DNA from: Vitrella brassicaformis CCMP3155
Taxonomy: Eukaryota > Protista > Chromerida
DNA: 64,000 bases
Direction of reading: 5' to 3'
NCBI GenBank assembly: GCA_001179505.1
Contig: CDMY01000447.1
Location: forward strand, 62,001 to 126,000
In this document: piece by piece, positions 43,640 to 51,949 of the stretch
Numbering within the stretch: position 1 is the first letter of the stretch
How the letters are laid out: every line of letters begins with the position of its first letter
Notes under the pieces: generated by a model
Databases searched by the model: none
Told to the model about the DNA's origin: nothing
What the model saw: only the letters and a program-made list of their open reading frames with translations
Made by a program: the position numbers and the translations under genes

Positions 43640-46600
43640 TCGTGCTCTGTTTCACGCAGACACTAAACGAAAAAGGCGAGGCGAGGCAAGTAAAAAAGCG
43701 GAAGGATGACTCGTTTCGACACTCACAGTCCCGTACGGAGGAAAGCCGACACGTCGGCCTCGGTAAGTGCACTGATGGATGGCGTCACGCAACAGTCGGG
43801 GCGCACAGAGCCTCGTGGGATGGCAATGTGCCGGCATGCATGGAGAAATGAACGAATACGCCTTTCTGCATCGTTGTCCGTGGTTGTATGTTCTCAGGCA
43901 ACGATTGCGGCACCGCCCAAAGAGGAGGACGGTTGTTCTCTGCGGGCGACGCGTCGCATCACCGCGAGCACCACAGACGAGGACCCGTCGCCCTGTGCCC
44001 AGTCGCCGTTTCGGCTAAGCCCCCGGCAGTCGTTCGACATTGCCACTGGAGCCACCTCGCGTGCAGACGGCGTCGGCTTGGCCGGTCGCATCGCCACGCC
44101 CCCCACAGACGCCCACACGGACGTCACGGCACACGCCAGGAAGCAGCGGGCGGCCGACACGACTGACGACAGCAATGCGGCCGCCAGGAAGCAGCGATCG
44201 GTCACAGGTAGTGCAGCTGGTCGGAGAAAGCGGCCCTCGCCGCCACAGACGGCCGATGGTGCTGCTGGTGCTGTTGGTGTTGAGAGGGGTCATGGCGGTG
44301 AGAATGCCGCGATGATCGGCCCAGGTGTCGGCATCCGCACAGGAGGTGAGAGGGAGAGAGAGGGAGGGAGGGAGGGAGGGAGGGAGGGAGGAGGACCAAC
44401 ACGCGGACACGTATGTTGTGTGTTTGTCACTCGTTGATGTGTGCAGGTGGCCGAGGTGACCCTTTTGCTGCCTTGGCCGATGTGACGAGGACATCCGGCG
44501 GCACTAACGCCCCCCGCCCCCTTTGCTCACCCGCACCACAGGACGGCCCCAAGACACTCACACTCACCACAAACCACTCTGGCTACATGAATGAGGAGAT
44601 GGAGCTTGTGGATGCGGTGGAACGTGTCGTATATCGCTACGCACTGGTTGCCATACAGTTCCTTGACAGGTGTGCACGCGCGTCATAACGCGCATAGCAC
44701 CTGACAACACGACACTCTCATTCACGCGCTCTTTGTCCGATGTGGTGTGTCGGTGTGCAGCAGCGAGGCCATGGAGGCGGCCCTTCGCCGCAGCCGGCAT
44801 GTGTCGTTCCATCAGTCACCGTCATCGCCCCCTCTTGATGCGAATGGTGCATCATCGGCCACCATGCCGCGACGCGTTCCCGACCTGCTCCTCCCAGCCA
44901 CACTCCCAGCTCAGTCACGACACCATCACCACCGTCAGCAGCAGCGAATCCCTCCTACAGCCGCCCCGCAGCCGCCCCATGCCATGGCCTTCGCCAAGAC
45001 GCCTTTATTGCCGCTGAAGGCCAGTGGCGCCGAAGCTGCTATTGGTGTTGACAAGGGGGGCATCCGCAGAGGAGGTAAGTCGGGATGGAAGCCAGAGGGG
45101 ATGTTTCATCTTCAGACACACACATCGATGGATTGATATGTTCTTTCTCTTCTTGTTCCTTTCTTCCAGGGCTGCCATGCCGTCGTACCCGCCAGTGATG
45201 AGCAATTGTGCATAGTGATGTGTTGATTGCTTGAATGGTCGGTGTGATTTTTGGAGGGAATGATGCGTATAGGAAGCATTCATTGCATTCATTGCATGAA
45301 CGATGCTGTCCATGACCGATACCACTTGTACGTACGACAGGTGCATTGCAATGCATTGACAAGAGCCTTTTGCTTTTCCCTATGATGGCGGTGTTGCCTC
45401 GCGAGGCTTCTCTCGTCGCCCAGATCAGAATTCGCCTCTTCACGTGCGTGCACGGTTTTCCACGTGCACGGTTTTGTAGACAAGGGCCGCATCAGGAGGC
45501 ACCATCACTTTCCACCGTGCCGGTCTTCTCTTGATGGCCTTCGCCTTTCCGTGCGCCTCAGATTTGGCGAGACTGCGAGACGGACCTCCCACAAACCCTT
45601 ATTTATTATTGCGTAATTCAGCACTGACCCGCCTCGGGCTGCCTCTGTACCACTATCCCATGACGTCGATACCACTGGTTGCAGCACGATGAGGACGGTG
45701 CTGTTGCCATTTTCCTGCAGTCCGCGCCACGGCGGCACGGCCGAGCCAGACCTGATGCGGCAGGCCATGTGCTCCAAACCGGCGCCGCCCGAAGAGCAGG
45801 CGTCGCATAACCACCAGCACCACAGACGGGGACCCCTCGCCGTACGCCCACTCGCCGTACGTCCAGTCGCCGTTTGGCACCAATGCCCTCGACCCCATAC
45901 GCGACGCGTTGGCGTTGGACCTCAAGGCTGAGCTGGAGGTGGTGCATGCCGAAGAATGCGTGAGGTATCGGTATGCTCTGGTCGCGATAGAATTCATCGA
46001 CAGGTATTATAGGGCCTGACATACCACGACATGCCACGCCTCACATGCTCTTGTATCGTGCTGCGTGTCGGTGTGCAGCAGCGAGGCCATGCAGGAGGCC
46101 GCTCGCCGCAGCCAGGACGACAAACCAAACAGATGGCTGCAGCAGGTGAGTCCGTCATGAGCCGAGAAGATCCTTTTCGTCACTTTCACTCTCCCCCTCC
46201 CTTCCCTCCCCTCTCCTATGTGTGTGCAGATGGCAGAGCTGCAGAGTGAGAGGGACAGACTACAGCGGGAAAACGAAGGGCTACAACGTACGGAAGTGTG
46301 CACAATGGACAATCGATGGATGGCATTCTGCCCCCACCACATGTGTATATCTGATGCGGGCGGGGATGGGGGGATGCAGATGACAGGGCGGAGTTGCTGA
46401 GTGTGATTCGGGCATACGATAAGCACCTAAGGGCTGCCGCATACCTCTCGCACGATCACGAAGGCTTCAGACTCCCCACACGACCTGTAAGCCGATAAGT
46501 GACCCACACAAGAAGACACAGACATGCATCTGTGGGCATGCAATTTCTACAGGTCAAGGCTTCGCCACCGCCCCCCACCATCGCTCCTGACGGCGCCCCG

Positions 46601-48110
46601 GCAGCCGAGCCGGCTCGACCGGCCAGTCCGGCTGGTGGCAGTGTGACTCTCCGACAAACGGCACACGCAGGCAAACAAAGAGGTGCGACTGCAGACAGGG
46701 ACAGCAAATGGAGGCACTCATTGATGTGTGTATGGATGTGTCCCGTCCGTGTTTGCGCGTACGGAAGGCCGAAGCGGGAAAAGGCGAAAGCGCCGTAGAA
46801 GGTCAGAACGATGACCCAAGCTGTTTTCGACACTCACAATCCCGCACGAATGAAAGCCAACACGTCCTCCTCGGTAAGTGGTGCACTGATGGATCACGTG
46901 ACGCCGCAGTCGGGGCGGACAGGGCCTCATGGGATGGCCATGCGACATGCATGGAGAAACGAACGAATAGGCCTTTCTGCATCGTTGCTTGTGGTTGTAT
47001 GGTTTCACAGCAGGCCTCTCTGCGGGTGACGAGTCATCACCGCGAGCACCACAGACGAGGACCCTTCCCCTTTTCCCATGTCGCCATTCCGTCTAAGCTC
47101 CCGGCAGTCGTCTGCCGTAGCCACTGGCGCGAGCGTGGCCTTACGTGCCATAGACGCCCACACGGACGTCACATCTCACCCCAGGAAGCAGCGTGAAGCC
47201 GACATGACCGCCAACAGGGACACGGCAGCCATCAGAGTGCCCGAGAAGGCCTCTGATGGGAACGTGACGGCCAGTGCAGCTGGTCGCAGGAAGGGACCTT
47301 CACCACCAGAGACGGCCAATGGTGCTGCCGGTGCTGGTGGTGTTGGTGTGGGGAGAGGCCCTGGTGGTGAGTACGACGATACCGCGATGATGATCGGACC
47401 AGGCGTCGGCATCCGCACAGGAGGTGAGAGAGAGAGAGACAGGGAGAGGGAGAGGGAGAGGGAGAGGGAGGAGGACCAACACACACGCGGACACGTATGT
47501 TGTGTGTTTGTCACTCGTTGATGTGTGCAGGTGGCCGAGGTGACCCTTTGCTGCCTTGGCCGATGTGACGAGGACATCCGGCAGCACAGACGCCCCCCGC
47601 CCCCTCCACTCACCCGCACCACAGGACGGCCCCAAGACACTCACACTCACCACAAACCACTCTGGCTACATGAATGAGGAGATGGAGCTTGTGGATGCGG
47701 TGGAACGTGTCGTATATCGCTACGCACTGGTTGCCATACAGTTCCTTGACAGGTGTGCACGCGCGTCATAACGCGCATAGCACCTGACAACACGACACTC
47801 TCATTCACGCGTTCTTTGTCCGGTGTGGTGTGTCGGTGTGCAGCAGCGAGGCCATGGAGGCGGCCCTTCGCCGCAGCCGGCATGTGTCGTTCCACCAGTC
47901 ACCGTCATCGCCCCCTCTTGATGCGAATGGTGCATCATCGGCCACCATGCATTCCATGCTGTTGTGTGGGTCACTCAATCGTTGATGTGTGCAGGGGGTC
48001 GTGATCCGTTTACTGGCCTGGGCCAAGGGATGAGGGCATCCGGGACAGAAGGCCCCCGCCCTCTCACCGCTTCCACAACACACCACGCCCCCACGACACT
48101 CACACCCATC
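43640..48110 (+). CDS. Hypothetical repeat-module gene(s) built from a ~1.2-kb duplicated unit
   Basis: Spliceable low-complexity exons containing the module EMELVDAVERVVYRYALVAIQFLDR|SSEAMEAALRRSR. The number of genes is unclear. Confidence 0.45.
43705..44866 (+). repeat. Local duplication, unit 1
   Basis: Aligns by eye with 46820-47950 across exons and introns. The 3' part (44440-44866 vs 47525-47950) is near-identical. Confidence 0.92.
46820..47950 (+). repeat. Local duplication, unit 2
   Basis: Direct-repeat partner of 43705-44866, offset about 3.1 kb. Confidence 0.92.
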
Positions 48111-48279
48111 AGGCCCCCATTAACAATAACAATACCACCGTTGTTGTGGTAGTACAAAGACAAAAGAAAGCATTCATTTGTTTTGTCTGTTGCCTTGCGT
48201 CTCAGATCATCGCTGCCTGCATTTTATATTCGATGGACCTTCAAGAAGCCTCCCGTCGAGTCCTCCGGCCCGCAGCCAC

Positions 48280-51200
48280 ACCGGCCAATACACTGTCACC
48301 GTCAAGGCGGGGACTCTTCATGATCGGGGCGTTGTGGAGCCCTCCGAGTGTCGGCCAGCGAGTGGATACGGAGCTCGGTCACAGAGTTGGAGCCATCCTC
48401 GGATACAAAATTCGGTACCGAACGCGCCTTTCGCTGACAAAAAATCGACTTCGCCTCCCATGGCATCTGCTCCAGGCACGGCAGCAAAAGTAGCTGGCAG
48501 ACCAAGATCTTATTCGCGACTACAGGGGTGGCGATCAGGTCAGCAGGCCGCCTGAGAGTCAAGCGCATCTTTGTGGCTTGTACCTCTTGAAATCAGGATG
48601 GCGCTGTCGGACAAGTTGCTGTCTGAACTCACCCACATCATGGTCGACGAGGTTCATGAAAGAAGTCAGCACACTGACTTTTTGCTCGCGTATCTGAAAG
48701 ACGTCCTCAAGGTGACGACCAGACTTGCTGTCTATTTGTTAATGTCGTATGTGTCTCTTCCATCGTCAGCGCCGTGTCGAGCCTCTCCGAGTGGTGCTGT
48801 TGTCTGCGACGATTGATGAGGAGAAGTTCAGTGGATATTTTGACTTGTGGGCTGAATGAGATGCCATGTCTTGTGGTGCACAAATCTAGAGGTACAATCA
48901 CATCACCAATCGACTCATACTAATCGTTGTTTTCCATTTCCCCCGCGGCAACGCTCAGGACGTGATAGAGAAGACCGACTACTATTACACCTACCCATAT
49001 GCGAGACACGACGCGCCTGTAGGTGTACGACCCCGCAAGAGATAATGTCAGGCGTTTGTGTTTGCAGAGATTCTGGAGCCGGGCGTCGACCGATGACAGA
49101 GAGGAGCTACCCTGAGAGAGTCCTTTTGCAGCTATGCCGACGAAAGAAAGTAAGAATGTACGTTACGACAGAACCATGTCTCGTCGGTGTGTTGCCCGTC
49201 ACATGACATCATCAACTACGGGCTGATCCGACGGCTGGTTGTGCACATCCGCACGACTATGCCCCCAACCGAAGCCGTCGTGATCTTCCTCTCGGGCGCC
49301 GACGAGATTAAGACGTGCCTCTACGAGCTGCGGCGTCTGGTTGATGACCGTCGGCCGCCCGAGTTCTTCCTTCTACCTCTTTACAGGCACCTTTCTTCAG
49401 ATGATCAGAACATGGTTCTGGAGATGCCACCAGAGGGTACAAGAGAGAGAGAGAGAGAGAGAGGCAGATATATGACGTATATTGTTCCTTGATTCAGGGG
49501 TGAGGAAGATCGTACTCAGCACGAACATCGCTCAGACGTTGATTACGAGGGGCCCTCGTCCCGGCCCTCCCCTTTTCCCGCCGCGGAGCGTCTGCTGAAG
49601 CAGCCACATTGGCGCTCTTTCGACCGCTCCCTTCTGCCCTCCGGGGACCCCCTGCATCGCCCTCCTGGTGGTCCTCAAGCCAGTGACGATGGGCAGCTGT
49701 TTTGGTGGCCCTCAAGCCGCTCAACCGCCTCAAGCCGCTCAACCGCCTCAACCCCTCAACCCTCTGTATGTGCGCTTCATCTTGTCGGGGAAGCGCGACC
49801 TCAGCCGCCCGCCCCCCTACCGGCGGATTACCGGGATTATGATTGACGACGTTCGGTGAGAACGATTGGATGAAAGACAGAACATGCAGATGAATACAGA
49901 AAGAGGGATGAGTCATGAGGGTTGTTGTCAGGCACGTAGTCGATACGATGATGCACAAAACAATGTTCTTCGACAACAACACCCGGGTAAGGATATAAAT
50001 AGTACACAACCGAGCTGTTGTGCAGGTCCGGGAACTCACGACAATGACTATATCGCGAGCGGAAGTGAGCGGAAGCAGAGACGCACACTTCGGATCAGTC
50101 AAGGAAAGGGACGAACAGGGCGGGTCGCTCCAGGTACGTGCTGGCGGCTAATTACTCGATCCGAGTTTGAGGACCTCGAGCCGAACGGCATGCCGGCCAT
50201 TGAAGGGAGTCACTCGATGAGCTTGCCTTGCACATCCTCGCAATCACTGACAGGTCTGCCTTTACACACCACGGAAATGGACAAGAATGTCATGGTGTTT
50301 GTGTGAGTGCGTATAAGTTTAGTGGCGAGCCTTCTTCATTCTTCAACGAAATGATCGATCCACCTTACCCACACCGCATCGACGCATCGGACATTTCGGC
50401 CATTCAGGTCAGCAGGAGACGCAGAGACACAACAATATGCAGCACGCATGTCTTGCATGTACACAGCCCTTCAGCTCACAACCCTTGGTGCTCACCTAGC
50501 CAGGCTGCCTGTCGACTTGAGAGCGGGAAGCTGCTTCTGATTCTCTGTGCGCTGGGCATCCCCAAATAGGTCAGCGAAGGGAAAAGATCGACTGTCAACG
50601 AGCTACGGTACAGATGTATGTATATCATGACAGGCCCACACCATCGCCGCGGCGCTGTCAGTCGAGAGTCTTTTCAAGGCGCCACTCGACAGAGAGGCAG
50701 AGGCGGACGCTGCGCGAGCCCATCTTTGTTTCAGAGACAACGCATCACGCCTGCATGTGTGTTCTCTGGATGCATCGTTTCTTCCTCTAAACGCAGGTGC
50801 CGACCTACATAGTCACCACCTGGCTGTCTGCAGAGATCCAGCTCCGTTAGCGGCAGCGGCTGGACTTCTTCCGTCAGCGAGCGACTCAAATTCAGACACA
50901 TGTATGTATGTATGTATGTATTGGTGTGTGTGTGCATTTAGGTGACGAGTGCTCGCTCACTATGGCTGACGTGTGGAGTAAGCAGGCATGGGGCATCCCA
51001 CTCGTCATCGTCGATCGCATCACCTTCCCCGGTAAGCAACCGATCAAGGCGCACATGAAGTATGACTGTATGACTGTGTATTTGTGTATTTGTGTGTGTG
51101 TGCATGTGCTTCAGAAGTTCAGCTACGACGGCCACAACGCCCCACCAGTATCGAGCGCGCGTCACGTGGATTTGGCCGTGGCCGCTCCAGAAGGAGATCA

Positions 51201-51605: not shown

Positions 51606-51949
51606 CGGCAGCACATCTCAAGAGACGGTGGACCTCAACCCGAAGGTGGAGGACGGGCAGACGCAACAATAAACCATCCACTTCCTGCACCGGCTGCACG
51701 GCTGTGACACTGCATAGGTGGCTGGAGGGGCCTGACGAGACGAAATAGTGTAGTGTAGTGAGATGGATGTAGCTACGGATGCAGCTGTAGTGCGACATCG
51801 ATCGTTGCCTGCATTTTATATCCAGACGTCTCTGTGTCTCTGTTGTCCCGTTACAATCGATAAAGTTGTTCGGTTACAATCATGCGTAATGGGCACAAAA
51901 GTCTCACCACACACGCGTCCCCGCCGTCTGTCTGTCTGTCTGTCTGTAT

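Follow-up and report, generated by a model that had tools for sequence, protein, structure and literature searches.

A target-flanked insertion in the motif V exon

The window, by which we mean the whole stretch of 64,000 nucleotides of Vitrella brassicaformis nuclear DNA that was analysed, contains on its + strand, at about 48.2–50.7 kb, a helicase gene of the DExH (DEAH/RHA) type with many exons. Homology searches were made exon by exon. Detectable homology begins right after the ATG at 48233, which is the first ATG to share the reading frame of the first homologous helicase exon, and the HA2-like exons reach 50729. The closest outside relative is the protein P0005, for which DHX36 structures were matched at E about 1e-97, and which carries the Pfam domains Helicase_C and HA2. 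In addition to the segments listed below, the relic holds the motif Ia region and part of HA2. Pfam searches with the individual exons gave no matches, the exons being too short. A search of representative proteins with the exon of 75 residues returned only fragments with 35–48% identity and no match to the gene itself, and word searches for the protein of this locus, with a length window that could miss full-length models, returned nothing.

The features of the relic and of the interrupted exon are as follows.

48233–50729, + strand: DHX36-like DExH helicase relic, as far as exon homology can be traced
48646–48657, + strand: DEVH motif
48800–48811, + strand: SAT motif
49205–49436, + strand: exon of 75 residues
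49498–49548, + strand: 5' half of the motif V exon, G-VRKIVLSTNIAQTLIT
49541–49548, + strand: target-site duplication (TSD), copy 1, GATTACGA, which is the last 8 nt of the 5' exon half, from the paralogue alignment
49549–49834, + strand: inserted DNA, 286 bp, 67% GC, C-rich on the + strand
49596–49598, + strand: TGA inside the insert, in the helicase reading frame
49710–49761, + strand: tandem repeat of 18 nt in 2.9 copies, within the insert; by pattern search it is not a genome-wide minisatellite
49835–49842, + strand: TSD copy 2, GATTATGA, 7/8 identical to copy 1, from the paralogue alignment
49842–49855, + strand: 3' remainder of the motif V exon, IDDVR, with a normal GTGAGA donor next to it
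50100–50123, + strand: motif VI, QGKGRTGR

The motif V exon is interrupted at 49541–49842. Across the two junctions the sequence reads ACG TTG ATT ACG A / 286 bp / (G)ATT ATG ATT GAC GAC GTT CG, followed by gtgaga. Deleting 49549–49842 restores T-L-I-T-I-D-D-V, and the restored STNIAQTLITIDDV agrees with STNIAETSITIEDI of the intact paralogue L011, and with STNIAETSITIEDC and TTNIAETSITVDDV in the database relatives P0005 and P0004. The same exon is in one piece in three paralogues from the same genome, namely L010 (C510), L011 (C284) and L008 (C256) (alignment A2), none of which has the insert. The initial annotation had proposed that a TSD-flanked insertion splits motif V exactly, and that excision of the 286 bp together with one TSD copy restores the motif; on both points the paralogues and the database relatives bear it out. 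It had also described a gain of 294 bp that preserves the frame and contains a TGA, and the coordinates agree: 286 + 8 nt makes 294 nt, or 98 codons, and the TGA is where it was placed.

The codons homologous to 'ATC ACC A' of the paralogues are present on both flanks of the insert, as 'ATY ACN A', and the duplication of 8 nt is therefore real and not a chance match. The chance of a 7/8 match, in a fixed register, is about 4e-4. The sole mismatch between the two copies is a C to T change in a CpG. A third GATTAC is found at 49826–49831, just within the 3' end of the insert.

Condition of the host gene and its paralogues

Two features of the locus were overlooked in the initial annotation: the status of the host gene as a pseudogene, and a GT-AG pair offset from the insert borders (49538/49804), which is discussed below. 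The host gene is, to judge from its sequence, a pseudogene which could not encode a helicase. This assignment is made because no Walker-A exon was found, and because of a premature TAG in addition to three deletions that shift the frame. The exon carrying motif I / Walker-A (GxGKT) and any N-terminal homology were not found within 5 kb upstream. The remaining lesions were identified by alignment to the paralogues L010 and L011, and for the indels there is a single, Illumina-based assembly to go by, the Vitrella brassicaformis assembly being short-read based (PMC4501334).

50057–50076, + strand: exact 10-bp tandem duplication over an exon end and its donor
near 50064/5: 5 nt missing, by comparison with L010 and L011, from an exon whose proper end is two bases into a codon (alignment A3)
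between 50204 and 50205, + strand: deletion of 1 nt, CGG to -GG, at the MPAI / SLDELALHILAI boundary (alignment A3)
between 50527 and 50528, + strand: deletion of 1 nt in conserved Gly-Lys codons, which are GGC AAG in both paralogues (alignment A1)
50567–50569, + strand: TAG in place of the GAG of both paralogues, the last codon before a conserved donor (alignment A1)

As a result of the 5-nt deletion, the phase is wrong where the intron at 50065–50098 joins its exons, and motif VI falls out of frame. This intron has 34 nt, as against 75 nt and 71 nt for its conserved counterparts in L010 and L011; it is the shortest of the gene and may be too short for splicing. The deletion at 50204/50205 puts the conserved SLDELALHILAI in a different frame from MPAI, and the deletion at 50527/50528 leads to a TGA three codons on. 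Reading the frame breaks as short introns does not rescue the gene. The only frame-keeping GT-AG pair at motif VI (50065–50108, 44 nt) deletes the conserved Q-x-K, and is also contradicted by the alignment with L010 and L011, in which the conserved intron is 50065–50098 and out of phase. There is no complete set of motifs I to VI in a single open and spliceable frame. Gene models in this region may for their part hide frameshifts behind implausible short introns, and should be read with this in mind.

The relic thus resembles helicases of the DHX36, DHX29 and DHX57 type (DEAH/RHA) in having DEVH, SAT, TNIAxT, QxxGRxGR and HA2-like segments in the order of the family. It differs from them in that the search for a Walker-A exon was negative, motif V is interrupted, the frame is lost in motif VI and HA2, and a stop codon comes prematurely.

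It belongs to a small family of DHX36-like paralogues, comprising L008 (C256), L009 and L010 (both C510) and L011 (C284), among which L011 is the sole member that looks intact. In L010 the TNIAE core of motif V is missing and one exon is internally shifted, but the splice sites are still canonical and QRKGRAGR is intact. In L008 there are frame breaks (two 1-nt gaps), and motif V contains a tandem duplication of 12 nt that brings a TAG with it. L009 breaks off behind the 75-residue exon, where it has a genome-wide motif of 21–24 nt that is described in the last section. Compared exon by exon, the copy in the window is 38–68% identical to each of the paralogues, and therefore has no close parent gene among them. 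Exact or near-exact tandem duplications of 10 nt and 12 nt are found at exon ends of two paralogues, at 50057–50076 of the window and at about 1835–1860 of L003.

Nature and origin of the insert

A query of 302 bp was compared by BLAST with the genome assembly (72,700,666 bp in 1064 contigs), and matched only itself at E<=10. Translated searches of the insert, using its three open frames against the whole genome, also returned only the insert itself, and a 30-mer from the insert occurs once in the genome when up to 3 mismatches are allowed. A multi-copy element is ruled out by these DNA, translated, exact and near-exact pattern searches. One of the two possibilities raised in the initial annotation, that of an unclassified element, is consequently not borne out if a mobile family is meant: the insert is strictly single copy.

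The ends of the insert have no inverted pair in any register (repeat search, seed 6), and at neither end is there an A or T run, a 3' poly(A) or a simple tail. The exact borders are GG..GA or GA..GG, and not GT-AG or GC-AG. The earlier observation that terminal inverted repeats, poly(A) and GT-AG ends are all absent is thus confirmed. There is no Pfam match to the insert at E<=10, and a coding fragment of a known protein family was rejected on this ground. There is equally no Rfam match at E<=1, and the RNA fold of the insert does not exceed shuffled sequences in stability (z = +0.22); a known RNA or a self-splicing intron was rejected accordingly. No bacterial, archaeal or viral relative was confirmed in prokaryote genomes and viral contigs, and neither these nor the nuclear assembly yielded a donor or source gene. 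A 22-nt flank probe for an empty-site allele or relatives in metagenomes was without a match.

In our best reading of the locus, to which we give a probability of roughly 0.68, there was one insertion at a staggered break, which captured a piece of DNA in a gene that was dead or dying. The order of events that we infer is as follows. The paralogue would have split from its relatives; later, a single event would have placed the 286 bp in the motif V exon, at a break whose stagger was 8 nt. Fill-in of the stagger would have led to the duplication of GATTACGA, and one of the two copies would later have been altered by a CpG transition. The inserted DNA would be either filler captured at the break or the sole surviving copy of an element that has otherwise died out; captured filler is favoured because the TSD is almost intact, no terminal repeat is present, and there is no fragmentary relative in 72.7 Mb. 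The paralogue may already have been dispensable at the time of insertion, or may have become so. If the relic is transcribed, the insert is most likely carried passively and left unspliced.

The word capture is used on the grounds that the TSD is present and the features of a transposable element are absent, with no donor in the genome or in the prokaryote and viral collections. The second possibility raised in the initial annotation, that of a repair-captured fragment, therefore survives as the best mechanistic guess, although it is a guess for which no donor sequence was found. On this reading the insert is neither an intron nor an active transposon, but a mutational scar in a pseudogene, rather than a new kind of intron or of mobile element. 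Since the host gene is broken at several places, no mechanism for excising the insert is needed, and most of the interest that such a mechanism would have had is gone.

Filler DNA is known to be captured at double-strand breaks, and the repair of a break can create an intron flanked by short direct repeats. New introns of this kind have reportedly been described in populations of Daphnia. The Vitrella insert is like these cases in consisting of a single piece of unrelated DNA in an exon, with a short target duplication and no transposon features. It is unlike them in that no donor was found, the host gene is dead, and the insert is most likely left unspliced. We consider it unlikely that the locus is one relic of a general, transposase-independent insertion process in Vitrella, in which staggered breaks of about 7–19 nt would be filled with unique or ectopic DNA and would occasionally give birth to an intron. 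Taken alone, a neutral insertion into a dead paralogue is of little weight. It is, however, a cleanly delimited and unique insertion, with a target duplication and without transposon features, and paralogues show the exon as it is when uninterrupted; taken together with comparable cases from this genome, it could throw light on the capture of DNA at breaks in chromerids, and on the birth of introns by that route.

Of the other explanations, the first is that the insert is a recently gained spliceosomal intron, which would be removed either through the GT at 49538 and the AG at 49804, or precisely, by a non-canonical route of the type described in Amoebophrya. This we judge decidedly improbable. 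Every GT/GC...AG pair that leaves the frame open from the start of the exon to IDDV was listed. The pair 49538/49804 is the sole GT-AG pair that keeps both the frame and STNIAQT, and its existence speaks for an intron, as does the fact that 294 is divisible by 3, which would have allowed the segment to be tolerated, or spliced, at an earlier time. However, the candidate intron has 267 nt, 65% GC and a GTTGAT donor, and its removal would add 9 residues to motif V, giving STNIAQT-RPPPYRRITGIM-IDDV, which would still be disruptive. The seven introns of the host gene that are supported by homology have 34–76 nt and 41–59% GC, mostly 41–45%. Their donors are GTACAA, GTGAGA, GTAAGG, GTGAGC, GTCTGC and GTCAGC, a pattern that can be given as GTRAG or GTCNGC, with YAG acceptors. 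With 267–294 nt and 65–67% GC, depending on the borders taken, the insert is unlike the neighbouring introns in size and composition, and on these sequence measures it makes a poor local intron. An intron at the motif V position is moreover absent from the aligned paralogues L010, L011 and L008 (alignment A2).

For the non-canonical route, the relevant comparison is with another alveolate. In Amoebophrya, non-canonical introns and introners have direct repeats that overlap their borders and inverted repeats of 8–20 nt near their ends, they form families, and their splicing was shown (PMC7789003). The Vitrella insert shares with them an alveolate host, a direct repeat of 8 nt at both borders and the lack of GT-AG at the exact borders, and the border-overlapping repeats are to that extent a point in favour of the intron. 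A further such point is that 9 nt on either side of the insert are able to pair in RNA. In contrast to the Amoebophrya introns, the insert is without inverted repeats near its ends and without family copies; the fold (z = 0.22) also argues against this route. Finally, selection for splicing is not expected, because the gene is broken elsewhere.

A target duplication of 8 bp is typical of the hAT and P superfamilies of DNA transposons, and a stagger of 8 nt is what hAT-type or P-type transposases make. The insert might on this ground be what remains of a family of non-autonomous DNA transposons (hAT-, P- or Merlin-like), a lone survivor with decayed ends, an explanation that we regard as distinctly unlikely. 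The TSD has the required length of exactly 8 bp, as in hAT and P-type insertions, and the insert is short and non-coding, which would suit such an element. Unlike those insertions, it lacks terminal inverted repeats in any register and any trace of a transposase, and neither DNA nor translated searches of 72.7 Mb gave a further copy or fragment. Nor can decay easily be blamed for the missing ends, since the TSD copies differ at only 1/8 positions, and ends decayed beyond recognition would therefore not be expected. Insertions retroposed by non-LTR elements differ from the insert as well, in that here there is no poly(A) or simple tail and no genomic source.

A local origin would require that the neighbouring exon and intron were duplicated, that the copy grew in situ by small tandem duplications, and that it then decayed, and it appears very improbable. 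It is suggested by the last 51 nt of the insert, which match the exon 49498–49548 at 25/51 positions on the diagonal +285 (a weak similarity, suggestive only, which includes the third GATTAC). The background rate for a diagonal match of this type is 2.5e-4 per position. It is also suggested by the nested short repeats within the insert, and by the 10-bp tandem duplication in the same gene. However, local alignments of the whole insert to the surrounding gene and its paralogues score no better than shuffles, and a copy of the neighbouring exon or intron or of a paralogue was rejected on this ground. The internal repetitiveness of the insert is unremarkable, being in the top 6–14% of window segments, which speaks against growth in situ by microduplication. 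A second apparent similarity between insert and gene falls on another diagonal, so that the two suggestive matches are inconsistent with each other.

An assembly artefact, in the form of a chimeric join or of mis-placed reads, is hardly credible: the assembly was made from short reads (PMC4501334) and the insert is GC-rich and locally repetitive, but both junctions lie in one exon with a clean duplication of 8 nt, the same gene continues on the two flanks, and a misjoin would not duplicate the target.

Repeated sequences around the relic

The helicase relic is bracketed by two copies of the genome-wide motif of 21–24 nt mentioned above, the first of which ends so close to the start of detectable homology that the ATG follows 3 nt after it.

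48209–48230, + strand: copy of the 21–24-nt motif, TCGCTGCCTRCATTTTATATT, just upstream of the ATG at 48233
51801–51822: second copy of the motif

The motif, TCGCTGCCT(A/G)CATTTTATATT, occurs at 455 genomic sites when at most 1 mismatch is allowed (227 forward and 228 reverse), and a reversed control gave 0. It is also present in L009 at about 7053. The copies have unrelated flanks and are often found in arrays on the same strand. The motif may be a signal at gene boundaries, a promoter or a terminator. Directly upstream of the relic, at about 44670–48100 of the window, there are three copies of a repeat unit of roughly 1.5 kb, with related ORFs that begin at 44670, 46045 and 47753.
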